From: Ruditapes philippinarum
Lineage: Eukaryota
Assembly: GCF_026571515.1 (NCBI RefSeq)
Contig: NW_026860675.1
Coordinates: forward strand, 1 to 64,000
Direction: 5' to 3'
Length of the DNA stretch: 64,000 bases
The translations under genes and the position numbers were made by a program. Below, in pieces: positions 4,832-61,504 of the stretch (its first letter is position 1; the number at the start of each line of letters is the position of its first letter). The notes below the pieces were generated by a model that was not told where the DNA came from, did not search any database, and saw nothing but the letters and a program-made list of their open reading frames with translations.

Positions 4832-7800
4832 TAATGATAATAATAATAATAATAAAAAATTTCTTTATTTAAAGAAGGTTACACATTAAGAACATACAAT
4901 AACAATCATATATATCTTATTTCCAATGTGGCCTTCTGAAGTAGAAAACAACAACAACAACAACAACAGGACATGCATAGGTAGAAAAATGAATGTATAA
5001 TATGTAATGTTTAGAATAATACAACTCATATACTTTCGACAGACACTCAACAATTTGTTTAAACATATACGTATATTTCATCATTCGTTCGTTCGTTCAT
5101 TCGTTCGTTCATATATTTATTCATTCATTCATTCATTCACTCACTCACTCATTCATTCATATGAACATCAAGATATGCTTTGTATTTTTCTTTAAAACAT
5201 TTAAGGTTATTAACATTACGAATATTTAAAGGTATATTGTTCCAAATGTTCATGCCATAATAAGAAAATGTGTCTTTAATATAATTTGTTTTAGGTCTTG
5301 TCCATAATACAATATCTTTTCGTGACCTAGATCTTAAGTTATATATTTTGTTGTCGGATAAAGTCATCAGTTCTGTCATATAAGTCGGTGCCATGTTATT
5401 TAAAGTTTTAAAAACAAGCACCGCCGTGTGGTATTTACATCTGTCAAGGAACGGTAACCAATTAAGAGTTTCGAATAGATTTATTGACGGAGATCTTTGA
5501 GGTTGCTGTAAAATGATTTTAGCAATTCGTTTTTGTAACTTACAAACATTATGTATGTAGTTTGTGTTTCCATTACCCCATATTATACAACAATAGTCCA
5601 TAATGGGCAATACATGTATATATGCATTGTAAAACAATAATTTCATATCAAAGTGCAAAAAATACGATATTTTTTTCAATAAGGCAATTTTTCCGTTAAG
5701 TTTTTTACAAACATTGTCAATTTGCAAGTGCCATTTTAAGTTGTTATCTATGCAAATACCCAAGACTTTTTGATCAGTTACATTTTCAAGAGCTATTTCA
5801 TTTATCTTAAGAATTAATTTTCTCATAATATTTACTTTTTGTCTTGTTCCTATTACCATACATTTTGATTTATCTGGATTTAAGGCCATATTATTTATTT
5901 TGCACCATTTGTCAATGTTATTTAAATGATCTTGAAGTTTTATTTCTACTTTTGATATATTTTCTCCGGACTCATAAAGAGTAGAATCGTCTGCGTATAA
6001 ATCAATTTTCATATCATTACCAATGAAAGCTATGTCATTTATGTATATTAGAAATAATAAAGGTCCTAATATTGAGCCTTGTGGAACACCGGAAATTATT
6101 TTCATTGGCTGAGATTGAAGATTACCTATCTTAACCAGTTGTATTCTGTTAGAAAGATATGACTTAAAAAACTTAACGGCATTTTCAGAAAAATGATAAA
6201 GTTTAAGTTTATGCAAAAGTATTTCATGGTCAACCAAATCAATATTGGTGTGATATAATCTCCACAATATTTGATGATGTTTGGTCCAATTCCATCTAAT
6301 CCTGTAGATTTTTTAATATTCAGTTTTTCAATAATAAGTTTTACTTCAAACGGTGTAATTAATTCAATATTAAATTCATGATATATTAGCTTTTGGTCTA
6401 AAGTTTCTTTCAATTTTGAAAAATTTGTATTTGAAAACTTTGTTTTATGTATGACATTCGAGATATTGACAAAATACTTGTTTAATTCATTTATAATATT
6501 TACAGTTCCGTAAATTTCTTTATTACCTGTCACTAGTCTGTCTGGCATTGTAATACAACCTTTTTTATTTAGATTTGAAACGTCCTTTAAAATTTTCCAT
6601 AAAAATGCCGGGTCTTTGTTATTTTTAATAGCATTGTTAAAGAAATCTCTTTTACTTTTTTTAATCATTGATGTTATTTTATTTCTGAGCAATTTGTATT
6701 GTTCATGTTTCCCTACTTTATGATAGTAATCGCGTTCATGTATAAGATATTTTATCTCATCAGTAAACCATTCCGGGCGTTTTTCTTTTATTGGTGCATG
6801 CTTTTTCAAGATAGTATTTAAAATGGAGTAAAATAAGCTAAGGGATTCATTCGGATTAATTATGTGCTCGACTAATTCAAGATCGGATAAAGCAAGGTCT
6901 ACCTGAAAATCAATTTCATTGAAGTTTTTAAAACATCTATATTTAATCGAATTATGTTCATTAATCAATCGGGTACATGCTTTCGTTGATCTTGAAATAC
7001 CTATCGGATAATGATCACTTAATGAGGTATCAGAAACAAACGATTCAATAATATATCTGCTACTGTTTGTATAAACATGATCTATAATTTTTTGGGTACG
7101 TTTTGTTATCCTAGTAGGATCTGTGATAAGTTGTTTCAAACCATATTTCGTTATCAAATCACCCCATTTTGTATTGTCATATTTTTTCTTTTTATTCATT
7201 GGATAAAAGTTTATATTGACATCTCCTAGAATATGATATTCTATATTTGATATATCTATTATACTTAGTTGTTTTTCATAATCGTCAATCCAAGATTGGT
7301 GTACATTTGGTGGGCGATATATAAAATTTAAAAGAAAAGGTTTGCAATTTGGGTAAATAATTTCCAACCAAACAGATTCTAATTCGTCCGTTTCTATATC
7401 GTAACGGCGCCGATATGGCACCTTGTCAGCAATATATATTACAACTCCCCCGCCTTTGTGACAACTTTTACGGTCCTTTCTTTCGTGTGTGAAATTGTTA
7501 ATATTTAATTCATCGTCTGTTTTATCATCACCAAGAAATGTCTCAGTAAAGCCGAAAATATCTGGCGAATTTAATTTTTTTAATAGATTGTATTTTATTT
7601 CGTCTATTTTCGGCATTAAGTGATTAACGTTAAGGTGTGCAATATGTAACCTCGTTTTTCAAACTTAGAATTGAACAATTTATTATCTGGAAAATTTGAT
7701 TTATGGAGCGTAACATTATTTAGTACTTTGCAATTATATTCATCATTTCCGTATATATTGTATGGCACTGATTGTTCAAAAGTAACAATTTGATTACCAG

Positions 7801-8753
7801 ATGCAATAGTGTCTATAAATTTTCGTTCTTTTACTATCAAATCGATAATTTTTCGCGTATTTAAACATATGTGTAAAATATCAATTGTGGAATACAACAT
7901 AAAATCGTAACATACATTATAAATTGATATATTAGTTTGAAAATCGCTATAAAGATCTTGTTTTAATATAGATTTATAAGTAGTTACCTCATTATGAATA
8001 CAATTGTATGTTTCAAATTGTTGATTTTCACATAAGCCAATGATTTTTGGTGATTTAGAATTGTTTAAAATATGTTTAATTTCATCCAACTTTGGTAATA
8101 AATGATGTATATTGAGACTGGCAATAAAAAGTCCCACTCCATCAAAAAGTAATGAGTTGGCTTCTGCATTTTGTCTTACTGCGTGTTGTTTAGTTGTTTT
8201 ACATACATGTGTGTGATAACTTATTAATAAATTGTTTTTTAGATGATTCTCAGAACGAAAGCGCCCCTCATGAATACATTTAGTACATGGCGTTTCTAAC
8301 AATAGCTCGGAACTATTTATGACATTCGAAGTTTTATCTTTGCAATTGATATTTTCATCTAAAACATTTGTTATATATATCGAAGGGTTTGTGATAATAA
8401 AAGATCGATTCGCACATAAGCATTTATCCAATACTATTTTGCATTTAATACATGTCTCATTATTATTAGTAAGTGAGATTTGAATTTTCGAATTAGGTTC
8501 ATTAGAACCGATTGATATATTATTTTGAAAATCGCTATAGAGATCTTGTCTGAATATAGATTTATAAGTAGTTACCTTATTATAAATACAATTGTATATT
8601 TCAAATTGCTGATTTTCAAAATTTGAGTGCCTGTCGGATATTTCCTAATTCCTATATATTCTAAAGCTATTCTGTCCATAATAATAATTTTCACTTCCGG
8701 GTCTTCTGTCGTTCCAAGTCTGTCTCCCCCCATAATGCATTCCCCCATAATGC
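4832..8753 (-). mobile_element. CR1-group (L2/Crack-like) non-LTR retrotransposon, internally deleted, 8-bp TSD ATCTATAA
   Basis: Absent from copies B and C (empty site aatatctataatcaacttac near 25730). TSD at 4824-4831 and 8754-8761. The 3' end has AATAAA plus a (ATT)n tail and a (TGAA)n tract in the 3' UTR. Encodes APE and RT. Confidence 0.92.
5149..8431 (-). pseudogene. LINE ORF2 (APE endonuclease + reverse transcriptase), frameshifted and with an RT deletion
   Basis: APE motifs: LHIAHLNVNHLMPKIDE, FGFTETFL, GGGVVIYI, IYRPPN, ILGDVN, IDHVY, SDHYPI. RT motifs: GVPQGSILGPLLFLIYIND, LYADDS. There is a 1-nt frameshift near 7650. RT motifs 1-3 are missing at ~6243, where GDYITPI is fused to DLVDHEILL. 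Confidence 0.9.
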
Positions 8754-25900: not shown

Positions 25901-26898
25901 CCAGTATGCCCTAGAAATATTTTTCTGTAAAGCGTTTTATTTTTGGTTTTCTATTAAAGTTTCCAAATAGTTTCCGAAAAGTTCCTCATAAGCCAAATAT
26001 CTGAACCACCCTTTGCTTCTATTGTTTTTTATTGTTGTTTTTTTTTCGCACCTAATACAAATTATAATAGGTGTTATACCTTATTTAAATAAAGATATTA
26101 TTATTATTATTGTTGTTGTTGTTGCTGCTGTTGTTGTTGTTAAGTATTTTGTATGGAAGCCAACATACTAGTACTGCTTTGTTGATATTTTGCCTCTTTT
26201 ATGACAAATAATTTCACATTCAGAGCTACTTCCTTTAAGTAATAAACATATAACTTGCTCTGAAACTATAATTTAAACATTATTATACCCCTGTTTACCC
26301 TTTGTAAAGATGAAACAAATTTTAATTGCTTCATAATGTGCCTTTAAAAATTTGCAAGTTACAGGTATGTAATGACTGCATGCGAAGCGAATTTTAACAT
26401 GATATTGATCTACCTTACCTTTTAGTAAAAGTTATATTAACAACAGGTTATTATGATGATTAATTCAATATGCTAGAATGTGAATGCATCTCGTAGCATG
26501 GCATAACATAGCTACGGAAAATTGTCCTCTATAACATCAAACATACTGGTATGGATTATTTACCAAACAGTAAATACTAAATAATACAAATTAAAATACT
26601 AGCTATATAAACAAATTTTATGTTTGATAATTGAGTCGCAGCCCTTTGATATCGAAGCGGAAAATGAATGATATATTTTAACTGTCTCATTTATGACGCC
26701 ATAAACAAAACCGGAAAGAACTCAATTTCTTTACTGTCTTTTTTTTGAAAATTTATAGATGTGCAAAATCACACGAGAATGAAGAAGATATCTGGCATGT
26801 ATAAATTGAAAAATAATATTGAATGATTCTTTGGCTGGAATATTCAATTGTATACTATTACATAACACGAGTTTGAGCAAGTTATCACGTTATTGCTC

Positions 26899-28727: not shown

Positions 28728-29736
28728 TTATAACTTTAACTTTTTTGTAATTGACAATCGACTGTCTAATGAATCAACAATATAACCGTCCTTAGCTATA
28801 TCAGTTTTCCAACGGCCATGTCTCTTTAAACATCTATCAGACACACCTGAGTTAGCGGCCACTGTAACTCCACTAGCTCTCAAAGAATGTGTACCTAAAT
28901 TTAAATTTGGTGCTACTAACTTTAATTTAGACAAAATGCATTCCCTAACTCGTGTGTAAGACAACTTTTTATTACTTTTTATAAGCGCCGATACCCCCTT
29001 TGACCTAAAACATGGCCTAAACAAAAATTCATTACAGGTTACGTCAAGACAAGCTGCCCTCATATATTTTTTAAGCATATTAAAAGGACATGCATTAGTA
29101 GTACCCTTACAAATCGGAACAGATTTTCCTTGCCTATACACATCAGTTTTGCTCTTACGAATGTTTATCACTAAGTGATCATCATTGAATGTTATATCTG
29201 AACAAATTAAAGAATTCAGTTCGTTGAAACGTAAAAACCCAGCGAAACCTAAAAGAATAATTGACAGATCTCTTAAGGTTACCACGTCGCTGGAATCTGA
29301 AAACATATCACATAATGTTTGTAACATTTCCGAATCTATTGTATCTTCCTTTTTAACAGGTTCATAACATTCTCGTTTACTTGTTTCCAATAAATGTTTA
29401 ACCATTGAATTCGTAGTAGGATCCACATAATCATGCAAAGAATGCATCCATTTAATAGAATACACGGTAGAAGAAATAACACCGTACGACTTTCCGTGAT
29501 CTAACATGTTTGTTAAATACATTGCTACAACTAAAGATGAAGCTGGTTTGGAAACAAAACCATTTTTGACACAATATTCTTCGAAATGTTTGAAATAGTT
29601 CATATATTTCTGTCTAGTAGAAACTGCCTGGGTTGTACAATATAACCTGCCATGTGATCAATAACTGTTTGATGTTTTTGAATGTCCACTCCTGCGTTGT
29701 TCATCATGCTCCTGATTGAAGGTATTAAGTCAACAC
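28728..29736 (-). CDS. Tyrosine recombinase (YR/integrase) of the DIRS-type element; main ORF 28728..29603, N-terminus frameshifted near 29628
   Basis: Catalytic residues FLRFNEL (R), KSKTD (K), HSLR (H-x-x-R), HGRW, DGY (Y); upstream acceptor ttttcgattatag|g at 29737/29736. Confidence 0.93.
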
Positions 29737-29834
29737 CTATAATCGAAAAGGCAAATATTATAAACTTCATAAAATATTGTAAAATAGAATACAGTACATG
29801 TCTCATTAAAATATATCTATATTGGCACTCCAAA

Positions 29835-31920
29835 CTAAAACCTGATCTTGAGTGCCAGCATACAAAACGGCAATGGTGTGTGTGCAAACACGCCATTATT
29901 ACCTTTACCAGTACGTATTATTCCATTTTTTGGTAAAACCTCTACATCTCTTATGTAAGTTTTAAAATTACATTTTGTATCAAACAAACAAGGCCAAAAA
30001 GCTGAAGATTTCCACTTTGGTATAATTAATGTGCAACTTGCATTTTCGTTTACAATTTTGTTTATACACTCTACTATTAGCCGAGGCGGCGGAACTAACC
30101 AATTATTATCATTTTTCCAGGACTGATCCAAAGCATTTATAGCTTCCGTTCCTGGTACCCACCACTTAGAGTTAAACCTTTCACAATGAGTGTTATAATG
30201 AGTAGAAAACCTATCTATTGTGTGTATTCCCCAAATACAATCAAAATATCTGAACCAACGATCTGATATTGACCAATCATCAGAATCAAGACATCTACTC
30301 AAATAATCTGATATCTGATTATTTTCTCTGGGTATCCATTCCGGGCTAATATGGATATTATTTTCTTCACAAAAATCATTGAAACCTAAAGCAATTTTTT
30401 GAAGCTCTGCGTTAACACTGCCGTTCAAAAGAATCGATTTTACATTTTGATTATCAGAAAAAACTTTCACATTTTTGTTTTTGAGAAATTGTGCCTGACT
30501 TCTCACAACCCTATTCACTGCCTCAACCTCACGCCAAGAAGAACTTTTAATCTGTTCTTCAAAAAGCCAACTTCCGGTGACTTTCGTATCTATATCTATA
30601 CTTTTCTTTGTATTATCTAGCATACATTTTTCCACTTCCGGGGAAACAGCTGAAGAAATCGGTGATTTCAACATAACATTCGACATGCAATCCACTTCCG
30701 GGGATAACAATGTTCCACTCATTTGAATATTAGAATGTAATTGAGCTTCATTGCTCGGAAAATATAGGTAACCACCATAACCAGATCCACTGGCATCGCA
30801 AAATACGTGTATATCGTACACTTTCATTTCAGACATGTATTTACCTGATCCATTCAAATTTCTTACATTTTCTTTCCAGTACATAATTTCATGTATGGCT
30901 GATTCGCTCACTAAAACTGGCGAGTCCCAACTAGCCCTAGAGATGATACATTTATACATCTCTCTCGTTCTCAATCTCACTATGTTACCAAAGACAAATT
31001 GAAGAGAAATCAGACGTCCAACCAAAGACGCTAACACACGGACTGGTAGAACACTACACTTGTCACAACTTATCTGATATAGTACAGACTCGATTGATTT
31101 TTCTATGACAGAAATTCGTTCTCCTGTAACAAATATCTTATTCTGAAAAAAATCTAATATAAAACCTAACCATGTTACTTTTTGACAGGGAAACCAATGA
31201 CACTTTTCTTCCGCCAACAAAAAACCAAATTCAATCAGTGTACTTTTTACAAATGCACTACTTTCTAATGCTTCTCGGAAATTAATATGACCACCGATGC
31301 CATCGTCAAGATACATTATCACCTTATGACCTAATGACCTTAAGTACATGACCAATACTCGGACAGTTTTAGAAAAAATATGCCCTGCGCTAGCTATTCC
31401 AAATGGAAGTGAATTAAACACAAAATAAGTCTGTTGACCATTATAGATCCATGAAAAACCTAAATATTTCCTATGAGCTTGAAAAATATCGATGTGATGA
31501 TAAGCTCCTTTCAAATCAAAAGTAAAAGCAAAAACCCCAGCACTAAATAGAGACTGAGCGACACGAACATCTTCAAACTTGATTTTGAATAGATGCAAAA
31601 ACTGATTTACATGCCTACAATCTAAAACCAACCTTGCTTTTCCGGCCTTATTTATAAGCCACAGTCAACGGATTTACAACTTCCGGCACGTGATCTACTA
31701 CCGAAATAACATGTTTTTCTAGTAAACACTCTATTTCCGTCGTAACAAAAGACGGATTGTCTCTAGCGGGCTTATTATTTTTAAGCATTACTTTACTAGG
31801 AATATTTCTAAATGGCAATTTGTAACCATTTTCTATAACTTCTACAATGAAAGAATCGCCATTGATAGATCGCCATTTGCTAGCATGCGCCTTCAATCTT
31901 CCTACTGGCGATATTACACA
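29835..31920 (-). CDS. pol: reverse transcriptase + RNase H + methyltransferase-like domain (frameshift near 31650)
   Basis: RT: VGRLK, VNPLTV, RLVLDCRHVN, DLKGAYHH, LPFGIASA, YLDDG. RNase H: FCDASGSGYGG, REVEAV, SDNQNV, WIPRENNQISDYLSR. MT-like: DDWS..HTIDRFS..RFNSKWW..NWLVPP..IPKW. Confidence 0.92.
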
Positions 31921-32017
31921 CTTAAGTTTTTCTTTTTTGGACTCAAAATGGTCTGCTACTGATACTGAGCATTAACTGTTCGGCTGAGAACAACATCCAT
32001 GATTCACAGAAGAAACA

Positions 32018-32539
32018 TTAAGACTTAAACATTTTTTTAGGAAATACAACGATTTCATTTTCTGAATGATTTTGGTTCGAATCGCAACTAATTGCCTCAA
32101 TATTTATTTGTTCCCTGTAATTGTGATTCAATGAATCACTGTCTAGCATATCGCAATGTTTATTAAATAAACAAAATGTACTCATCTTATTATTCAAATT
32201 TGTAGTATTTGCTGGACATTCTTTTCTCCAGTGACCCGGCTTTCCACAGTAAAAAACATAAGCCTGGTTTCTGTACACCAAATTGCTGCGAAGTGGATTG
32301 ACTTGTAGCTCGTGCAGGTACACTCCTGGTGTAAGGCTTGGTTCTAAACTTTTTAGACTTCTTATTTTTCTCAGCTTTGAGCTTCCTGTCAGCCCTGACT
32401 TCAGCTTTATACATTTTCTTTTCATCATCGCTGTCGTCTGCTAGAGGATTTTGTTCATACTCATGAACTACTCTCCACCCCAATTCACTAGCATCCGCCA
32501 ACTGTATCATCTTTTGTCGGTGTGACAAAATATCCAAGG
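32018..32539 (-). pseudogene. gag exon 2 with CCHC zinc knuckle (frameshift in a T6 run near 32252)
   Basis: RQKMIQLADASELGWRVVHEYEQNPLADDSDDEKK; LCF/YCGKPGHWRKEC is restored by removing one T. Confidence 0.85.
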
Positions 32540-33479
32540 CTGAAAGAAAAATATGCCTATTACTAAAAATATTTAACATAATTTCTATAAATAATGTAAT
32601 CTTTATGAGTCAATATAATCAACTCCTGTGATATAATCCTTGTAACTGAAAATCACATTGATATAATACATAATTTTCTTACAAACTTTTAAAATAAAAG
32701 CAGCCGTATCTAACAAATACTAATATATCACCGTCATTCGTAGTTTTCCTGTGTTTGCTATACTTTAAAAATATCTCAATCAGTAAGCATGCAAAACCCG
32801 TGCTACCGCCATTGATAGTATCACTAAATTTATTTATAAATGATACTACTCTAACTTATTCATATCGGCCTGCGCATTACCAACGCAACGGGTTTTAAAT
32901 CTGTGACAAGCGTATGCAAGTTTATAATGCAACTATATCAGTAATACTATAAAACATGAATCCCCTATTTATACATGTTAAAGAAAAAGGCGAGTCCACA
33001 TTAGTCATTGCTAACCATACAAAAAACATCTATATTGATCGCATCAGCTTATAAAATCTTTATCTTTTTTTTTTTTTTTTTTTTACGTCCTTATGTACTT
33101 ATGTCCAAAAAGACATTAATCTAAATAAATTTGAAAACAGAAGAAACAAAGATTTTTTTTTTTTAAATATAATAGACATATAATTATTATATTTATTATC
33201 ATTCTTATTATTAGCATTATTATTCCTTTAGAAATAAACATATCCCAACAATCTTCATACAGAACAATTCACCTCTAGTATAACAAAAGACACGTGTATC
33301 GAGACCACGTGGTCTACACATTAAACACGTAAAAATATTAGAAAATAGCGAATTTATTAATTGTATCCCGAATTTAAAACTGCTGAATAAAAACCAAGCT
33401 TTTGCAAATTGAAAATGCTTCTTATAAATGGAATAGAGTAGAATTCATTAAGTTTTTGTTTTGTTTTTTAAACACAAAC
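32540..33479 (-). other. Putative 940-nt spliceosomal intron in gag
   Basis: GTTTGT...TTTTTCTTTCAG. Removing it joins SITT-A-LDILSHRQKMIQLADASELGWRVVHEY in frame. The interior is AT-rich and non-coding. Confidence 0.8.
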
Positions 33480-33774
33480 CTGTTGTAATACTGCTTTAGG
33501 CCTTCTCAATTTTACTGCTATCTAACTTAGACTCGGCTTCATTAAGCTTCAACATAACTTTACTATTATGACAAAACTGTTCTTCGTTGCTTTTCCTTTT
33601 AAATTTTGGCTGAGATGATGCCACTAAATTGCTTATTCTAGCAAATTGAGAAGAATTATTTTGTTCACTTATCTTTTCGAACATCGTCCCAATTTCTTGA
33701 AGTAAAGACTGTCTGCTTTCCTCCACGGTGTCCTTTACAACGTCCTTGATAATGTCGTGAGTATCTCGATCCAT
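33480..33774 (-). pseudogene. gag exon 1 of YR retrotransposon (premature TAA at 33496-33498)
   Basis: MDRDTHDII...PKFKRKSNEEQFCHNSKV...IEKA*SSITT, followed by the phase-1 donor ag|gtttgt. Confidence 0.8.
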
Positions 33775-34557
33775 GATAAAAACTTCCCTATGTAGTTAAC
33801 GACGTGTACCAAGCGAGAGTCTCTGTAGAACTGACCACCAGTTTTGATATCGCACCTGTTGAGACAACAGTTCTCCGTCTATACGATGTAACGCGGAGAA
33901 CTACATTTCTTATCATTTTTTTTCTTTTAACAAAAGAGACCGATTCATGTATAATACATATGTTAACTGTTAAAAAATGTTAAAATTTCACTACTTTTTT
34001 ATTTCATTTTTATTCTTGTCACATCAATAAAGCTCATACCATACTTTCGCAAATGTGAATGTGATCAAATCAAGCGGAGATCGATTTGTCAACCTTTTTA
34101 TAAAACCGGTTAAAACCGGTTCTTATGTGACGGTTACAGATTAATAATTATGGTATAAACAGCAACTATACGTCGTTACTGAATACTGATATCTCCTTTA
34201 GCCCGTATTACATGGCACGTTAAGTGACCCTTTGTGACTTTGCGTGTACATTAAAGTAGTCCTCTTTTGAAATATTTTCTTTAGGTACTACCGTATTTGC
34301 CATGTTCATTGACGCATTCTGTCAGATCAGTGCAGATAAAGACAAAAATCCTTCCATTGACACAAACTAAATCTAAATGTTCTTTAATTATCATTATTAT
34401 CACCACCTTAAAATTGAAACTGACTCAGATATCTTAAATATCGATCAATATGACTTTTGGGTCTTTTTTTGTGTGTGTGTGGGGGGGGGGGGTGTACACT
34501 TTTATTCTTTTCAATTACAGGTTGTTTTGAACATCCTACATTTCTTATTTGGAAACT

Positions 34558-52830: not shown

Positions 52831-54084
52831 AATAAAAAGAACATGCCATTATTTCGATATTGTTTTAATTTGATATCAGCACTTCTGTCTCTTATTAAAG
52901 TACCAGGTTTAATCTTATGTCGATATCTGGTTAAAGATTCAGCCATTATTTCGATTATATCGGTAAGATGCTATTTCGATAATAACAGTAGATGTATCTG
53001 GTTCAAACCATGCCATTTTTGATGATGATAAAATGGTGCTCAAATATTTGCCTTTATTTAGTTTATGTTTGTATCTGGTTAAAGAATGGCTTTTTTATTT
53101 TGTTGGTTAAGCAAATCGAAAGCTGGTTCTATTAACTATAAAGTTATGTTGGTATCTGGTTAAAATGTACTTTTTTACTTAGCTTATGTCTATAAGTATC
53201 TTCGCCTTTATTTGGATTATATTTGTATCTGGGTACCTTTGTTCGTGTGTTCCTACTTGTACCTCTATATGTTCTAGATAGCTTTTAAAATATAAATATA
53301 TAATGTAACATTAAATGAACATGGAATAGAACGTATTTCAATCAAAAATACATTGATTCTTGGAATTAAATGGAAGTTAATATGTAATTATTATCCCTAC
53401 CCAAAGCCACCACCCCTATCCCCCACCCCTACCCCCTCCAGATAAAAAACTATCACTACTTTGCGTATGTTTTAAATGCATGTTCTCCGTCACAAAACTT
53501 ACGATTTTTTATTGGAAAAAATAAAGATCTTGCACACTTAATATATATTGACATTAATATTGTCTCCACACTGAATGCACAACTTTTTAATTAATACCCT
53601 TATCAATAGTAAAATTTCAGTACCATTTTAGGTACTTTTTTTAACAAAAGGTTATTTTAAGAAAACAATTTTGGATGTCTCTTTGACAAAACTTATCTTT
53701 AATGTTTTATTTCATCATCGTCTTTTTCTAACATTTTATTCTATAAAAAAATGTATAAAAAATGAGAAAATCGCATGCATAGTTACAATATGTCACACCA
53801 TATAAATATTCCCCCAAAAAATGATAAATTAACGAGGACTCTGTGAGAGGGACGAGGTGACTTTTTTCCTGGTATGATTCAACCGTCCAGTGACATTGCA
53901 TTATAAGTATTACTAAAGAAAGCGAATTCATGATGATTTTTCACGAAAAGAAAATGTGAAATATAATCCTATTCTTAACATTTATAAAAATATTTTAACA
54001 TTGTCACCCCGTTTAACTACTGTTTAATTTAATAATACATCTAAAAAATCGCATTGTTACTGTATGTCAAATCGCACTTAAAAA

Positions 54085-54294
54085 GGCGGGGCGAATTGTC
54101 CCAAAAACTCCTATACTACGTCTAAAAATATTATATAAAAGTATATATTTTATTGCCTTTTGTACTTATGGAGGCGGAGCTAGAGTACACCACGTGACGC
54201 TGGTGTATTGGAGTTGTCACTTATACGCAGTTGAGATTGTCAATCAGAATACATTGTATGTGGGCAGATACGTTTATACACCGGCAATATAAAT
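54085..54294 (+). promoter_or_regulatory. Putative proximal promoter of IL-1-like gene
   Basis: GC boxes GGCGGGGC (54085) and GGAGGCGGAGC (54170), overlapping E-box/CRE half-site CACGTGACG (54191), TATA-like TATAAAA (54134) and TATAAAT (54288), 210-420 nt upstream of the ATG. Confidence 0.4.
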
Positions 54295-54507
54295 TGATTT
54301 TCTGTCGTTTATATATTCAATTACTCATTAACAAGCCACAGAGCTATGACTGTAAGACTTATTAACTTGTATTTGTTTTGTACATTCCGTACGTAGCTAA
54401 TCAGAGATAGGAATTTAAGAGGAATTCATTACTTGTGATAGGAGATAAGAAAGATTATAATTTGGTTTGCATTTTGGAATTGTTTTAACGACTAAGACAC
54501 ATCGAAA

Positions 54508-54645
54508 ATGCTTCTAAGTTCAGTGAATTTTGTTGCTAAAACGAAGGCAGTGAAATACAAGGATAAACCAGAAAAGAAAAATGAGAAGAAAATCGAGGAA
54601 GAGAAAGAACTAACAGCTAAAACCTGCAAGAAATGTCAGGAAGAG
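54508..54645 (+). CDS. Exon 1 of IL-1-like gene (MLLSSVNFVAK...TCKKCQEE)
   Basis: ATG in aaaATG context, 46 open codons rich in Lys/Glu, phase-0 donor gtaggt. Confidence 0.75.
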
Positions 54646-57600
54646 GTAGGTCTTTTATATATATTTATGTTCTTGGTTAATGCTTAAAAAGGTTGCAAAG
54701 ACTTTCGTCGATACAAGAAAATTTCCATTGCGATGTCATCCTCTGTTTAGAAAAGTGCAATTATATTTCATGTCAGATTCAAACAACTTCCCCACAACCT
54801 TGTAGACCAGAAAAGAATATGTGATTTCATGTCAAATTCAAATAACTTCCCCACAACCATGTATAACAAAAAATGTGCTGAATTTGAAGGATGCTAAATG
54901 CTTCCTGCAAAACAAATATAGAAAAAGAATTTAAAAATTTAATATATGTCCCCCTCAAATGAATTAGATAGTACAATTTATTCACTTTAAACAAATCTTA
55001 TCCATAATCATTAAACAAAACTACCATTGGTTCTTAGGGAAATAGAAGTTGGAAAAATGAATGAAGTAATAGAATCATCTGTTGAATCATTTTTTTCTTT
55101 AACTAAAGATGTTTTCAATCACATTTAAAATATTTAGGACCAATTATATCATCATTATTGTATATTGTATATAATGTACACAATAAGCATATTTTCAAAT
55201 TATTGCCTTGCATTGCATGGAAGTGGCATAAGCACGTTTGTTTGCACACCAGATAACATTTTGTCATTAAAATGAATATGGCTAGGTACGAGCGACTTGT
55301 TAAAATACATTTTTAAAAGAATAAATTCTATTAAATTGCACCTAATACTTTACTTTCACTTAAAGCGAAATTAAAACAAACGTGTTTACCTCACAGGGCA
55401 GTGTACTAATTTCATAATATCGAAAATAGCAACTAGAAATGGGACCACTTTTCAGAGCACATTGTTTTAAGACCCCCTACAGTTGCCAACACGTGTTAAT
55501 AAGTAAAAATAAGAAAACATATCCTATTTCAGGAAGGGGGGTTTACTATGAAATTGAATATATACAAAGATAGTATTACATACATACCTGTTTAAACCCA
55601 ACACCTTGGCATATCAAGTTCTGTCAGCTTTGTTAACTAATGTAGCGGAAAAGCGATTTGTGGTTTATCTAATTAGTCGGGTCTCGTGCGACAATACATT
55701 AATGAGCCATCCATAGCAGGTGGAATGTGCCGCGTTCCCTCATGCTGCGGGAAATGCTAGCACGTACACTAAACCCCCCTCTAAGACGAAAATACCGTAT
55801 GGTAAAGAAAAATAGAATGTGACAACATTTCGACCCCATACTGCTTTGTTTTAACTGATATAAGGTTACGATAATATCTTAACGAATATCAAATTGCAAA
55901 ACAGAAAGCCCTACGCTAGGTGACGGTCACCTACAACGGTGCATTTATCGAATAATTAACATAGTGTAACACCTGTAATGATATCTTTTGAAATCCGACA
56001 TTGATATAATTTAATAAATTTATAGATGATTTGTTAACATTGTCCTTATGAACGCTGCTGAATTTTTAATTGACGTGCTTTGAATAGTAAAGCATGCGTC
56101 TGTGGGGAATTTACTCTGATACAATCACTTTTTTTAAAATCATAATTGTTCAACATTTATCGTAATAAACTGATATATTACTGACAACGCATGGAACTTC
56201 TGTAGATTTTATATAAAGTCCAAGATAGCATCTGACTTATAAGAATAAATTGTTAAATGTATTCAAATTCGTTATTAATGCAATGTGATGTATGGCAATT
56301 GATTGCATAATGCAATTAATCATTAATGGCAATTTGTTATCAATGACAATCTAAAATGAAATAAGAAATATATATATTCGATTCGTTATGTCAACGATTT
56401 TGATTTTATGCTTCGATTTAAATTTTACTATGACAAACATGGGTTTTCTTTATACATTTACAGATTGAGGAGGAAGGCAAAATATTCCGTTTCCCAACTA
56501 CGTCATCATACAATTCAGGGATCAGCTTTAGTTCCTCAGGTAAGCGAAGAAATTATGTTTCTAACAGAGATTAATTCATGCTGTAATGCCCATCCTGTTT
56601 TGTAACAACATCAGCATCTAACAGAGGCTGTATGATATAAAGTGTATATGTAGGCCGTCGCAGAAATAACAACATTAAATGAAATGTCATGCTGGTATCC
56701 AGCCAGACAGCAAATGGGTTTTAAAAGGTGTAAATATTTTATATAATTGTGCGAATTTAATAGGCATGATAAACCACTCCTACTTGCTGAAACATAATAA
56801 TACTACAGTACATAATGACCTTTGTTTTTTTCTCAAGGTCATTCAAATCTGTATAAATAGGAAATAAAAATGTTGTCTTTTTTCTGGTTTTTTCTTGTTT
56901 GTGTTCTTTTATAATAAAAAAACATCGTTTTCTATGAATAGCCCATTGTCGTCATAGAGCGAATCTCAATTTTCCAGAAATAAAAGCTCACCATTTACGT
57001 CGGCGTGGCGCGTGTGTATTTACAATCTAATACCGAATTTAATTGAATTGAAGTCTCTAAAGTGATGACAAAATGAATTTCAGGAAACCTGTTTACATCA
57101 AATTCTGCTATATTTTTTTTAGAAATTACCCTCCTACTAGGGAATATATAATAACTGTATTACCGTGGTAACGAAAATGTAACATTCAATGTTTTTCTGT
57201 AATATAATATCATTATATACGCGTGCGAAAACTATAATTCTTAAGAATTAAGGATAATCATTTTCAAGGAGCAACATGCCATATTGTCTGTGTTTACATT
57301 TATCCTTATTAATTCGCTTCTTTAAGAGCAACATTACAAAGGTTGATACTGACGTATTTATAGTAAACAGATATTAAATTTATCTCTGCAGGTTACAACA
57401 GCGAAGAAAACCTTGACTTTAGCCAGTTTCCTGGAGATCGTGTCAACATAGCAACGGGGGACGACCTCTGTTTGACCGTGGAACAATTCTTTTACACCAT
57501 TGGCCTACGTGACAAAGCAAAGTCGGACAGCACATGTAAGTTTACGATATATTTTACGACATTCTTTACGACATATTCTAGAATAATTATTTTTTTCTTT

Positions 57601-58965
57601 ATCGAGCTACATCTCCTCTGATAACTTCCAGCGGCTGTAACAACAATTTATTAATGGTAATTGTAGCTTTTAATTCTTTTTTTGCTGACATCAAATGAAA
57701 AATTCGTATATATTGTCAACAACATTTACTGAAACTTTTTCAGGCATATTTCGGAAGAAAGTTCTAGACCGCCAACCATTACCCAATGGCTGCATGGAAA
57801 CGGTTGTTTTTGCACTAGACTGTGACCAGGAATTCTACTTAACAACTTCTAAAAATAGAGATTTGGAACTGAATGTAAGTAACCAGACATCATTCAATAA
57901 AACACTTTAATAGTCTAATTAACCCTAAAAATGAGGTTAAAAGAGCAGTATATGTCCCCATTCCACCATTAAACCATTGTATTGTACACAAACCTTACCA
58001 ATCATCTATTCAAATGATTGCAGACGACATCAGCAGACGGCAGTAAAACCGCTAATCAATTCACTCTTGTTCGTCTTAATTTACCTGACAGCAAAGTTCC
58101 AATCAAGTTCAACCCAAATCAGTTCTTTGAAGGGTAATTGTCGGCATAGAATCAGATTTTCATAGACTTCAGGTGAAATTCACCTGGTTGAGAGGATTTC
58201 AAGCGGTTTTAAATTACAAAATGGAACTTAGAACTAAGCACAGATCAATAATTGTATCGTCATAATATCTGCTTACTGAAGAAGGGAAAAATGAAACAAC
58301 AAAGTATTAACTTTCCTGAGAAATTCAAGGTCGTTTTGGTTTCTGAAAGATGAAATTGTGCAATAAAATGTTAACAAATCTTATGAAACAGAAAATGCGA
58401 AATATCAAATTAAAAAAAAAATTAATTCTTTGTTTTTTATTTCTTTTTAGATTTATCAATGTTCTGCATTTCATATTTTCAGTTTTCTTCTGTTGACCCA
58501 TGCCTAGATAGTCCAGATGAAAGAACGTTCTTGGTATACTTCACGGGTATTGGCCATTGCTTCATCCAGCCGAAACTCCACAAAAACATGTATCTTCACC
58601 ACATCGATCAGGCATTGAGCATTCAGCCATTAGACTTAAATTGGAGGTGCCCGGAAGAATACTTTTTTAACTTCAGCGCTGTTCCCGAGCCGTATGTCAA
58701 ACCTAAAAAGGACCCGAAAGTGTGTACGCATATACAGGAAATTCAAAAAGAAATCGCAAGCACAAATAAAGGAACAACGAAGGAAACCTCGACGCAAGAA
58801 CTCGTGAAAACAATTACCGCGGAGGTTCTAAGACATAACATTCGGTCTGAAATTCCGGATTTTCTTCCATCCAAAAAATCCCGAAATGGACGGCGTTTAT
58901 TGGCAGGATTATTATTTGGGTGCTTCAGTGCAAAGAGCAATAAATTGACTACAACTGAAGTTTGA
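54508..58965 (+). CDS. Five-exon gene, 323 aa: leaderless protein with charged N-terminal pro-region, putative IL-1-family-like beta-trefoil core and basic/Cys C-terminal tail. join(54508..54645,56464..56539,57392..57535,57744..57874,58483..58965)
   Basis: All four introns are GT..AG with pyrimidine tracts (gag|gtaggt, tttacag|att, cag|gtaagc, ctgcag|gt, cat|gtaagt, tttcag|gc, aat|gtaagt, tttcag|ttt). Phases 0,1,1,0 join into a stop-free 972-nt CDS. The core has RVNIATGDDLCLTV..CIFRKKVL..TVVFALDCDQEFYLTT..LELNFSSVDP..DERTFLVY..CFIQPKLHKNMYLH..EYFFNF. Confidence 0.85.
56464..56539 (+). CDS. Exon 2 of IL-1-like gene (IEEEGKIFRFPTTSSYNSGISFSSS)
   Basis: Acceptor tttacag, donor gtaagc, phases 0 and 1 fit both neighbouring exons. 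Confidence 0.8.
57392..57535 (+). CDS. Exon 3 of IL-1-like gene (GYNSEENLDFSQ...KSDST)
   Basis: Acceptor tctctgcag, donor gtaagt, 144 nt, phases 1 and 1. Confidence 0.85.
57744..57874 (+). CDS. Exon 4 of IL-1-like gene (CIFRKKVL...RDLELN)
   Basis: Acceptor ctttttcag, donor gtaagt, 131 nt, phases 1 and 0; lies within ORF 57695..57910. Confidence 0.85.
58483..58965 (+). CDS. Terminal exon 5 of IL-1-like gene (FSSVDPCLD...KLTTTEV*)
   Basis: Acceptor tattttcag, 160 codons to TGA; matches ORF 58459..58965. Confidence 0.85.
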   Translation, partial: FSSVDPCLDSPDERTFLVYFTGIGHCFIQPKLHKNMYLHHIDQALSIQPLDLNWRCPEEYFFNFSAVPEPYVKPKKDPKVCTHIQEIQKEIASTNKGTTKETSTQELVKTITAEVLRHNIRSEIPDFLPSKKSRNGRRLLAGLLFGCFSAKSNKLTTTEV

Positions 58966-61504
58966 TGCTAAATAGACAGAGTAGTTCAAATCTAATAGTG
59001 CTAAATATCCGTCCATGATTTCATTTTTGTTCATGATTTATCATAAGGTGCTTATTATTTTCTTATACATTTTTGGTCAAACGAAATCCAAGATATAGTG
59101 TTAACGAGTTATTAAAGACTTTGTTAAACATGTGCTAGTATCTTAGTGCCTCAAATATAGTAACAATTCAAATCCAATGTCTCACTAGGGGTTGGGTGGC
59201 GGGGGGGGGGGACCTCATATGGGGGTTTTAAGGAGAAAGTGTTTTCTCGGGTGTTTAAGTGAAATGTTGATTATGTTATATTTAATGTTATTTATTTACA
59301 ATCAAGAGGATAATGTTATATTTGTATTTATCAAAATCGCGACATCTTTGCTTCTGTTTGTGAAGGTCCTGTTTGTTATTGTACTCAACTGTTTATTTGA
59401 CCTTGACACTATCGGTGTTAGGGGCGTTGTTATTTTTTGTCATAGTATTTTTTTTTTGGTGTTTATATGTCGTACTCGACCACAGCACGTTTTGTGTTAA
59501 CGTATAGATTATTACAATGTTTGTTAGAAATCTTTGTCACGAGAAAGGGGACTGTTTTGTCACATTGAAAAAAAATATATATACATGAACTGAATCATTT
59601 GGTCTTACATTGGCACCAATTGAAATCTTGCTTTTTCTCAGCCTTCATTTTGGACACTAGAACTTCAGCTTTTTTCTCTTTTTTTCAAGATTTTATTTAA
59701 AAAAGGGGGACAAACAGTACTCTTTTTCGTGACCTTTTGTATAATCTTTTTCTTATTTGTATCCATTTTGACGAGAGTGTTTCTTATGGGCTCCATGTAT
59801 ATTGTCTTAAGAGTTTCTGTTAGTTAAAATATTTACGTTTGTACAAGTCAACGTCCGCGTTTTTTGTGGGAATCAGATAAATATAGGAATAGGTTTTAGT
59901 AACTGTTATATTTATAGTATGTACAGTATATGTATTATTTATTTGTTGGTTGCAATTGTCAACTGTAAAACGTCCGCGTTTTTGTGGTAAACCATTATGT
60001 ACATATTTAGGAAAATAGTTAAGTTTTCTTGATGTATGATTTAAGCCATATATCTTCCAGGATAGGTTGATAAATAAAACTGTTTATATATAGGAGAGAG
60101 GTGGCGATTGAACGGCATTTCAAAGGCCTACTCTCCTTTCATTTATGTGGTTATGTCACGTCAGATGAATTATTGAGAACAAAAGATAAACCGTATAAGA
60201 CACGTGAATGTGTAAAACATATATATTTATATCATAAACAAAATGATTAGTTTGCTGTCTTTTATAAAGTCACATTTTCTGAATACCTTATTCTTCGCGT
60301 GACTTTTAATTTCCTCGCGTGCGCAACTTCAATCTCATTAGATAATATCTAATCAAGCGTTCCGGGAATCAGGGTGACGGAAACGCTTGTCAGTGTTTCA
60401 TTTACCAGACGACATTTTAGAGAGATTCATGACATGAAGTTTGGTCATTTGATTGGTCAAACATGCAATATAACGAGTGTTCTAATTATGGTAACACTGT
60501 ATTATGTGTTCTAAAATTGCTAAACAGAAAATTTCGGAAAGTATGTATTATTTTAATGCATAGAAGTGGTGGCGGTCTAATATTCTAAAACAAGACATTT
60601 CCTTACGGGAATAAAAGCCGTTTGTTTGTAGGAATTAACCGTAAGATTTAATATCTAATCATAACAAAATACATGTTGGCAATGTATAATGTACTTGGTA
60701 GGGACTAATATTTTCCCATAGAACCATTTACTACAAGATTTTATTGTTAAGAGTTTTTGCTTTAATAGAGGAAATGATTTCGTAGCTACTTAAGAAAATT
60801 TTGATAATTTCGCACGAATTTCGTGAATAGTAGGTTGTGTGTATGCATACATGGTGAATTATCTTTTGTTTTAGATTTTAAGTTATTGTGCTCGTGCGGT
60901 ATGAGAATTTAATATAGTTTCGTTTAGACATTGTCAAAATCAGTGGCACTTGAAAACGCACGAGAGAACGAAATTTCGTTGATATAGTTCTAGCTTTCAA
61001 AGGAGTAAAATTTCGCATCTAAACAAGATACTGTGATATATTTATGCAAAAAATGCATTTTTGATATTTTGTGCAATATAAGACTTCATATATCTGTTAT
61101 CATTCCATGTTCATCGTTACCATAGCAACGATATCTGTTGTATATGATCACAAATTATCGATCTTTTCCTCAAGCAATTTATTTAAAGATATATTGAATA
61201 GCATTATTTCATTAGCGTACACATTTTTCAGATTAAAAACGCTTGGGGATTTTTCTTCTTCTCTTTTTTCTAGAACATTTTTGTTAATTATATCATTTTA
61301 AGCTAGACAGATTTTCTGTTGAGGTGTTATATTTCAGAGCTCAGCTGTATTGTCCACATTCTTGATTCGTGATGAAATAAAATGCCATCAGAACAGCTGA
61401 TGTACTATTATTGCATTTGACATTTTATAAGAACAACCCTGAATTTTTGCTGACAAAAATTATACTATAGTAGTATGTTCAAATATACAGTATGTTGTGA
61501 TCAA

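Follow-up and report, generated by a model that had tools for sequence, protein, structure and literature searches.

A gene on the plus strand of the 64,000-nucleotide stretch of Ruditapes philippinarum DNA analysed here (contig NW_026860675.1, positions 1 to 64,000, hereafter the window) encodes a protein with a predicted central beta-trefoil, and two introns interrupt this trefoil at the places and in the phases that we take to be those of vertebrate IL1B, namely in phase 1 just before strand 4 and in phase 0 at the end of strand 7. It seems fairly probable to us that the trefoil shares its ancestral gene with the trefoils of the vertebrate IL-1 superfamily and of the FGFs, with a leaning toward the IL-1 superfamily, in which IL-33 would be the nearest relative of solved structure. 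The two introns are shared with FGF genes as well and speak for this stock as a whole, while the leaning toward IL-1 comes from other evidence, which is weighed below.

Intron positions in the clam gene, IL1B and FGF genes

The gene has five exons and runs from an ATG at 54508 to a TGA at 58963-58965, with coding exon sizes of 138, 76, 144, 131 and 480 nt (stop codon not counted) and a product of 323 residues. This structure was checked by translation of the three putative last exons and by placement, on positions 53600-59500, of RNA-derived contigs from two runs of independent studies (X1, depth 49; X2, depth 22). All four joints (54645/56464, 56539/57392, 57535/57744 and 57874/58483) are present in the RNA contigs with GT..AG borders, and single RNA contigs of 1000 and 932 nt, with ends near 59150, cover exons 3, 4 and 5; the gene is transcribed and spliced according to the five-exon model. 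Each of the last three exons is open in one frame only, which on translation gives intron phases of 1, 1 and 0: exons 57392-57535 and 57744-57874 are both read from the third base, and the latter closes flush with ...DLELN while 58483 opens flush with FSSVDP, giving the junction LELN/FSSVDP. These last three exons, their phases, the 131-nt middle exon and the junction had been proposed in the original prediction and are borne out by the reading frames and by the RNA joints of both studies.

The structural mapping of the introns was made by alignment ranges, not by residue pairs, on a model of the Mercenaria protein P0005, a member of the same family. In P0005 numbering, intron 3 (57536..57743, plus strand, phase 1) splits Cys codon 112, two residues before strand 4 (114-124), which in the window gene begins immediately after the split codon (IFRKK...), and intron 4 (57875..58482, plus strand, phase 0) falls after residue 155 and before residue 156, where strand 7 (152-156) ends. 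The IL-1beta chain is aligned to the model at a near-constant offset (model residues 76-224 to chain residues 3-153), and the internal introns therefore correspond to mature IL-1beta residues ~39-41 and ~82-84. In human IL1B, an exon of 131 nt would be entered by a phase-1 intron at mature residue 40 and left by a phase-0 intron after residue 83, positions for which the literature search gave no published source and at which both internal introns of the clam gene would then be located. The last IL1B junction is presumably LQLE/SVDP, for which no published source was found either. It has been reported that the intron phases of the IL-1beta coding region are II,0,I,I,0, the last three thus being 1,1,0, and that the 12-strand trefoil is encoded in the last three exons (PMC4880838). 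Of what the original prediction had stated about IL1B, these phases and the placement of the trefoil are therefore confirmed, while the 131-nt exon and LQLE/SVDP stay presumptive. The exon sizes presumed for IL1B agree with the published phases.

If introns were placed at random among the ~450 slots of a 150-codon domain, the chance that two of them would both fall within ~2 codons of given sites in the right phase would be ~1e-4 to 1e-3 by our estimate. In MytiLec-1, a bivalve trefoil lectin gene, the whole trefoil is contained in one exon, and trefoil genes thus do not generally have the two internal introns. Furthermore, Fontenla-Iglesias et al. (2026, Nat Ecol Evol; preprint 2025; PMC13736523), who described IL-1 homologues ("IL-1anc") across Eumetazoa, several per bivalve species and most of them carrying a PDZ domain at the N-terminus, reported that two central trefoil introns have kept their phasing from the IL-1 genes of humans through to the IL-1anc genes of invertebrates.

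Conservation of the introns within the family was judged on two paralogs in the same genome, which are located ~33 kb apart on opposite strands of contig C7113 (G000:C7113:386500-424726, loci L002-L005). In the first, the orthologue of P0005, a phase-1 intron precedes V-F-R-K-K, the exon that follows has 131 nt, and a phase-0 intron comes after L-E-L-N; exons 2 and 3 are fused, and the intron upstream of the trefoil is missing. The second belongs to the P0023-like type, for which the full-length family alignment gives ~23% identity to P0005. Here a Gly codon ~15 residues upstream of strand 1 is split by an intron of phase 1, a further phase-1 intron precedes V-F-R-K, the middle exon has 125 nt, and a phase-0 intron comes after L-E-L-Q. 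The second exon of this paralog has 52 nt, and strands 9 and 10 are separated by an additional intron of phase 1 that was either gained or kept. Both internal introns, present in the window gene and in both paralogs, are therefore of old standing in the family, whereas the middle-exon length of 131 nt and the phase-1 intron upstream of the trefoil vary. The latter, intron 2 of the window gene (56540..57391, plus strand, phase 1, ~14-15 residues upstream of trefoil strand 1), is present in the second paralog and is weak evidence because it is absent from the closest one. The residues S-V-D-P follow the last intron only in the window gene and its closest relative; because the other relatives do not keep them, they were rejected as evidence of homology, and the likeness to human IL-1beta at this point, on which the original prediction had drawn, is by comparison of the family sequences a coincidence.

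The FGF genes provide a control for the intron argument. By the established structures of FGF1 and FGF2, the FGF introns would be located immediately ahead of strand 4 and immediately behind strand 7. In FGF5, coding exon 1 has 364 nt and exon 2 has 104 nt (PMC2754481), sizes from which intron phases of 1 and 0 follow. In two FGF genes of the window's genome, the last exon starts in phase 0, 6-7 residues before the C-x-F-x-E of strand 8. The original prediction had set FGF-type intron positions against those of IL-1 genes; as the FGF positions are not different, this comparison does not separate IL-1 from FGF. Its more general claim, that a shared intron position speaks for homology rather than for convergence of the fold, holds up insofar as the internal introns are shared and are kept in two deep paralogs, and falls short insofar as FGF genes share the phases, so that the match is not specific to IL-1. 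Internal introns that IL-1-type and FGF-type genes both have speak for descent from the stock as a whole, and introns alone cannot assign the gene to IL-1. The leaning toward IL-1 rests on the middle exon of 131 or 125 nt instead of 104 nt, a domain size and loops like those of IL-1, a profile match to IL-33, a match to Pfam IL33_bt below the cut-off, the model's best query-normalised scores and longest alignments, which were to IL-18, IL-1beta and IL-33, and the lack of any FGF signal.

Another locus of the same genome, L008 (G000:C14792:56314-56538, minus strand), gave a weak match to Pfam FGF (E=0.1), and its open frame seems to hold strands 5-8 without the usual last intron of FGF genes. 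Two TIR-domain matches (26566-26871 and 31229-31525) lie on this contig at a distance of 25-30 kb, and the locus may be another trefoil gene beside TIR-domain genes.

The trefoil domain and its bivalve family

In the AlphaFold2 model, which was made on P0005 with the family alignment and stands for this relative instead of the window protein itself, there are 12 strands between residues 79 and 221, pLDDT (predicted local distance difference test) values exceed 90 for residues 79-222 (block means), and the remainder is disordered. The central domain is, as modelled, a beta-trefoil of ~150 residues. Foldseek gave similar E-values (~1e-5 to 1e-6) for designed Symfoils, CBM42, IL-18, IL-1beta, IL-33 and FGFs, and neither these E-values nor the VIA-align Z separated the trefoil families. 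The query-normalised template modelling scores were highest to IL-18, IL-1beta and IL-33 (0.35-0.36, compared with 0.30-0.34 for others), and 140-143 residues were superposed at 2.6-2.8 Å on the IL-1 superfamily (IL-1, IL-18), compared with 122-126 on FGF. On the evidence of this model, structure alone does not decide which trefoil family is the closest.

When a profile of the trefoil only, built from 18 members, was compared with the PDB, it matched human IL-33 chains with E=0.0038-0.0053 (20 bits over 118 positions), a specific but weak match; up to E=10 the same profile retrieved no FGF, lectin or fascin chain, and nothing beyond IL-33 appeared below E=0.9. In this alignment, strand 8 (P-D-E-R-x-F) is paired with the strand-8 stretch of IL-33, and F-I-Q-P / K-G-Y-Y is paired with the region that bears the F-E-S-type motif in IL-1 proteins. 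Only one of the 18 members, P0018, matched the Pfam family IL33_bt (E=0.0042, 17.5 bits), below the cut-off of 27, and six-frame genome scans with Pfam IL1 and IL33_bt gave no match. Pfam FGF (PF00167) matched none of the 18 members even at E=10, while the same model finds true FGF exons elsewhere in the genome.

Several observations weigh against the leaning toward the IL-1 superfamily. The nearest clusters in the ESM Atlas were fascin/FGF/FRG1 and ricin types, none of them IL-1, and the full-length family profile found nothing in the PDB. No Pfam family reached its cut-off in the 18 members, and PF00340 (IL1) had no match in them at all. In strand 9, F-I-Q takes the place of the F/L-E-S motif ("FES-PG-WF" region) as defined in PMC13736523 and PMC12108812; the strand reads [FIL]-[IL]-Q-P, then K-G/N, then Y-Y/L-H-H, which is an analogous pattern and not the motif itself. 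The many invariant polar residues are unlike those of fast-evolving cytokines, and the PDZ domain of most published invertebrate IL-1anc proteins is lacking. Among the TIR-domain matches listed, at least 131 in number, none falls on contigs C9162 or C7113. To these points are to be added that the model is that of a relative and that FGF genes share both internal intron phases and presumably both positions.

The family itself was reached by searches that were made exon by exon with the window sequence. Single-exon peptides matched nothing in Pfam or among the PDB sequences, whereas a search with the exon-5 peptide led to four close relatives, and a profile built from these, compared exhaustively with 1.84 billion proteins, gave 37 family proteins, many of them of full length (283-399 aa). 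Where the sources name them, they are "uncharacterized" proteins of bivalves (Mercenaria, Mactra, Dreissena, Mya, Pinctada, Crassostrea, Magallana, Mizuhopecten, Mytilus, Potamilus and Tegillarca), among them XP_022288630.1 of Crassostrea virginica and XP_021372121.1 of Mizuhopecten. A word search with the trefoil profile returned short bivalve fragments only, with no Pfam domain and no PDZ-bearing relative, and Pfam scans of the 18 full-length members found no PDZ family. The family is found across bivalves, in every bivalve order sampled, and is distinct and unannotated. Between P0005 and the peptides of the window gene, identity is 32-72% per exon and 48-72% over the trefoil-coding exons 3-5. 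Across sequences that are ~30% identical, eleven trefoil positions are invariant and seven nearly so, and many of these are polar (H121, H122, D124, R137, E140).

The exons of the window gene follow the architecture of the family, in which the N-terminal pattern M-[IL]-L-S-x-V-N-F is followed by a variable basic/acidic region, often with C-x-x-C, a conserved central domain and a variable tail ending in G-C-F-[GS] with basic residues. The coding part of exon 1 (54508..54645, plus strand), which is delimited by the open reading frame (ORF) listing, the RNA joint 54645/56464 and the alignment to P0005 and P0007, consists of 46 codons from the ATG, which specify the conserved N-terminal sequence MLLSSVNFV..., a stretch rich in Lys and the C-x-x-C motif; RNA contigs extend the 5' untranslated region upstream to ~54340. 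No hydrophobic core of a signal peptide was seen in the N-terminus, as judged by eye. Intron 1, between 54645 and 56464, is in phase 0 according to its RNA joint. Exon 2 (56464..56539, plus strand, 76 nt, bounded by RNA joints) encodes part of the disordered pro-region and ends on base 1 of a Gly codon, and exon 3 (57392..57535, plus strand, 144 nt) encodes the linker and, by translation, RNA joints and the P0005 model, the predicted trefoil strands 1-3, ending on base 1 of a Cys codon. Exon 4 (57744..57874, plus strand, 131 nt), delimited by translation and RNA joints, encodes strands 4-7 and ends in ...DLELN. The coding part of exon 5 (58483..58965, plus strand) has 160 codons and the TGA; it encodes strands 8-12 (to ~58692) and then a tail of ~90 residues, predicted to be disordered, with the conserved GCFS motif and the C-terminus -TTEV, and is followed by a 3' untranslated region to ~59150 (RNA contig ends at 59149-59153).

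The last residues of the window protein, -T-T-E-V (58951-58962, plus strand), form a C-terminus of the class I PDZ-binding type that is common only to the two closest relatives, P0001 and P0007, which is curious because most published invertebrate IL-1 homologues themselves bear a PDZ domain. The invariant H-H-x-D and R-x-P-E-E of the trefoil, together with the frequent N-terminal C-x-x-C, would by their residues suit a metal- or partner-binding site. Within intron 4, a 110-nt exon-like ORF flanked by AG and GT (58024-58133, plus strand) was rejected as an exon, because a length of 110 nt would put the reading out of frame and the ORF takes part in no RNA joint; one RNA contig (57939-58103, depth 5) enters it unspliced, and this is probably intron retention or noise. 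The remainder of the window is AT-rich animal DNA (G+C ~32%) with retroelements. Long open frames of a long interspersed nuclear element (LINE)-type reverse transcriptase element and of a tyrosine-recombinase (DIRS-like) retroelement are located at 5152-8644 and 28731-33795, both on the minus strand, and short repeats recur at ~2.9-3.3 kb, 15.0-15.4 kb and 22.0-22.4 kb.

Ancestry and role of the trefoil

Under descent from the common stock of IL-1 and FGF trefoils, the two internal introns would be inherited ancestral introns. The protein is predicted to consist of a disordered N-terminus of ~75 residues, a 12-strand trefoil of ~150 residues and a disordered C-terminal tail with the conserved Gly-Cys-Phe motif. 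It might be made in the cytosol like IL-1, IL-33 and FGF1/2 and be held at a membrane through its C-terminus, since the conserved Cys there, beside a basic tail, is suggestive of a lipid anchor. Its action could then be that of an IL-1-like alarmin, once released or cleaved, or could be exerted through an intracellular partner at the invariant surface residues (Y-L-H-H-x-D, R-P-P-E-E); the invariant polar residues of the trefoil (H-H-x-D, R-P-P-E-E) suggest that such a binding partner would be conserved. As the conservation is strong, unlike that of typical cytokines, the role may instead be purely intracellular. More tentatively, the family may represent a second, IL-33-like branch of the IL-1 superfamily that extends across bivalves outside the published IL-1anc genes, lacks the PDZ domain and is perhaps membrane-tethered; its introns, together with those of the FGF genes in the same genome, would then demonstrate two ancestral introns common to the trefoil genes of IL-1 and FGF, and all would go back to one cytokine trefoil gene that existed before protostomes and deuterostomes diverged. 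We put this wider proposal forward as a possibility that is less likely than the common descent itself.

If the trefoil came from the IL-1/FGF stock and its product were not a cytokine but a membrane-tethered intracellular adaptor, the likeness to IL-1 would be a matter of ancestry only. Such an adaptor would account for the degree of conservation within the trefoil at ~30% identity, with its many polar positions, and for the conserved N-terminus and the conserved C-terminal Gly-Cys-Phe and basic tail, and it would agree with the lack of a signal peptide and with our finding no linked TIR-domain receptor gene among the matches listed. However, IL-1alpha, IL-33 and FGF1/2 are also without a signal peptide and are stored inside cells, and the published invertebrate IL-1anc proteins are cytoplasmic or nuclear yet induced in immune responses (PMC13736523); we consider the adaptor rather unlikely. 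Alternatively, the protein could be a divergent intracellular trefoil of the FGF type, similar to the FGF homologous factors (FHFs), in which case the introns would represent the FGF pattern with a longer middle exon. The phases 1 then 0 derived from the FGF5 exon sizes, the phase-0 start of the last FGF exons of this genome just before strand 8 and the fascin/FGF/FRG1 cluster in the ESM Atlas are what this explanation would predict, and the absent signal peptide and the well-conserved surface residues are also properties of FHFs. Against these points stand the absence of Pfam FGF from all 18 members and of any FGF chain from a profile search that reached IL-33, the middle exon of 131 or 125 nt where 104 nt is typical of FGF genes, the domain of ~150 residues with IL-1-length loops, of which more is superposed on IL-1 and IL-18 than on FGF, and the missing C-x-F-x-E signature, which together make an FGF-type trefoil slightly less credible still than the adaptor.

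An independent origin of the fold, with intron matches due to chance, appears very improbable. Trefoils are simple, threefold-repeated folds, their convergence has been argued to be plausible for IL-18 and IL-33 (Rivers-Auty et al., PMC5861070), and the sequence evidence for a relationship is weak. However, this explanation has to contend with two introns that match in place and in phase, are kept in deep paralogs and are absent from the bivalve trefoil lectin gene, with the small estimated chance of such a double match, and with a profile that matches only IL-33. Descent from the IL-1/FGF stock with a leaning toward the IL-1 superfamily is therefore the explanation that we prefer.

Comparison with known systems

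The existence of IL-1 in invertebrates was unsettled for a long time, and Fontenla-Iglesias et al. answered it in the affirmative from structure, synteny and intron phasing. The general idea of the original prediction is thus already in print (PMC13736523), and what is added here is an unannotated bivalve family without PDZ domains, together with a limit of the intron argument: since FGF genes have the two trefoil introns as well, these speak for a common origin of the IL-1 and FGF trefoils and cannot alone mark a gene as "IL-1". No paper noting that IL-1 and FGF genes share intron positions was found in the literature search, nor were exon boundaries of IL33. The family can be studied in oysters, mussels and clams, in which immune genes matter for aquaculture.

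With the FGF family, whose trefoil belongs to the same SCOP "cytokine" superfamily, the clam gene has in common the intron phases 1 and 0, presumably at matching positions, and some FGFs are likewise without a signal peptide. It differs in having no Pfam FGF match, in its middle exon (131/125 nt compared with 104 nt), in its longer loops and in the absence of C-x-F-x-E. FGF genes, with three coding exons, are not known to have an intron just upstream of strand 1, whereas the clam gene has further introns upstream.

The gene resembles IL1B and the classical IL-1 genes in that the trefoil is encoded in the last three exons with phases 1,1,0 and internal introns ahead of strand 4 and where strand 7 ends, and in that a disordered pro-region without signal peptide precedes a trefoil of ~150 residues, of which 140-143 are superposed at 2.6-2.8 Å. 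In contrast to these genes, the clam family has no Pfam IL1 match, F-I-Q in the place of F-E-S, a long conserved C-terminal tail and a conserved N-terminus and C-x-x-C, and the upstream phase-1 intron is lost in the nearest paralog. Exon 3 of the clam gene, which precedes that of 131 nt, has 144 nt and presumably differs in size from its counterpart in IL1B.

IL-33 (Pfam IL33_bt, PF15095; PDB 4KC3 and 2KLL) is an intracellularly stored factor without a signal peptide. It represents the only solved family that the profile reached and shows the top identity among the structural matches (14-17%). The score remains under the Pfam cut-off, however, and no chromatin-binding N-terminal domain is evident in the clam family.

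The clam family, which may already be included in the published set of IL-1anc sequences from invertebrates and fish, differs from most of these in lacking a PDZ domain and from one scallop example in its trefoil coordinates: none of the scanned clam-family members has a PDZ domain, and the trefoil occupies approximately residues 75-225 of proteins of ~300 aa, compared with residues 126-290 in the published scallop PmaxIL-1.1. On the other hand, the clam family and the IL-1anc proteins, which include a subset without PDZ domains, have in common their occurrence in bivalves, the lack of a signal peptide, a trefoil known mainly by structure and the phases of the two central introns.

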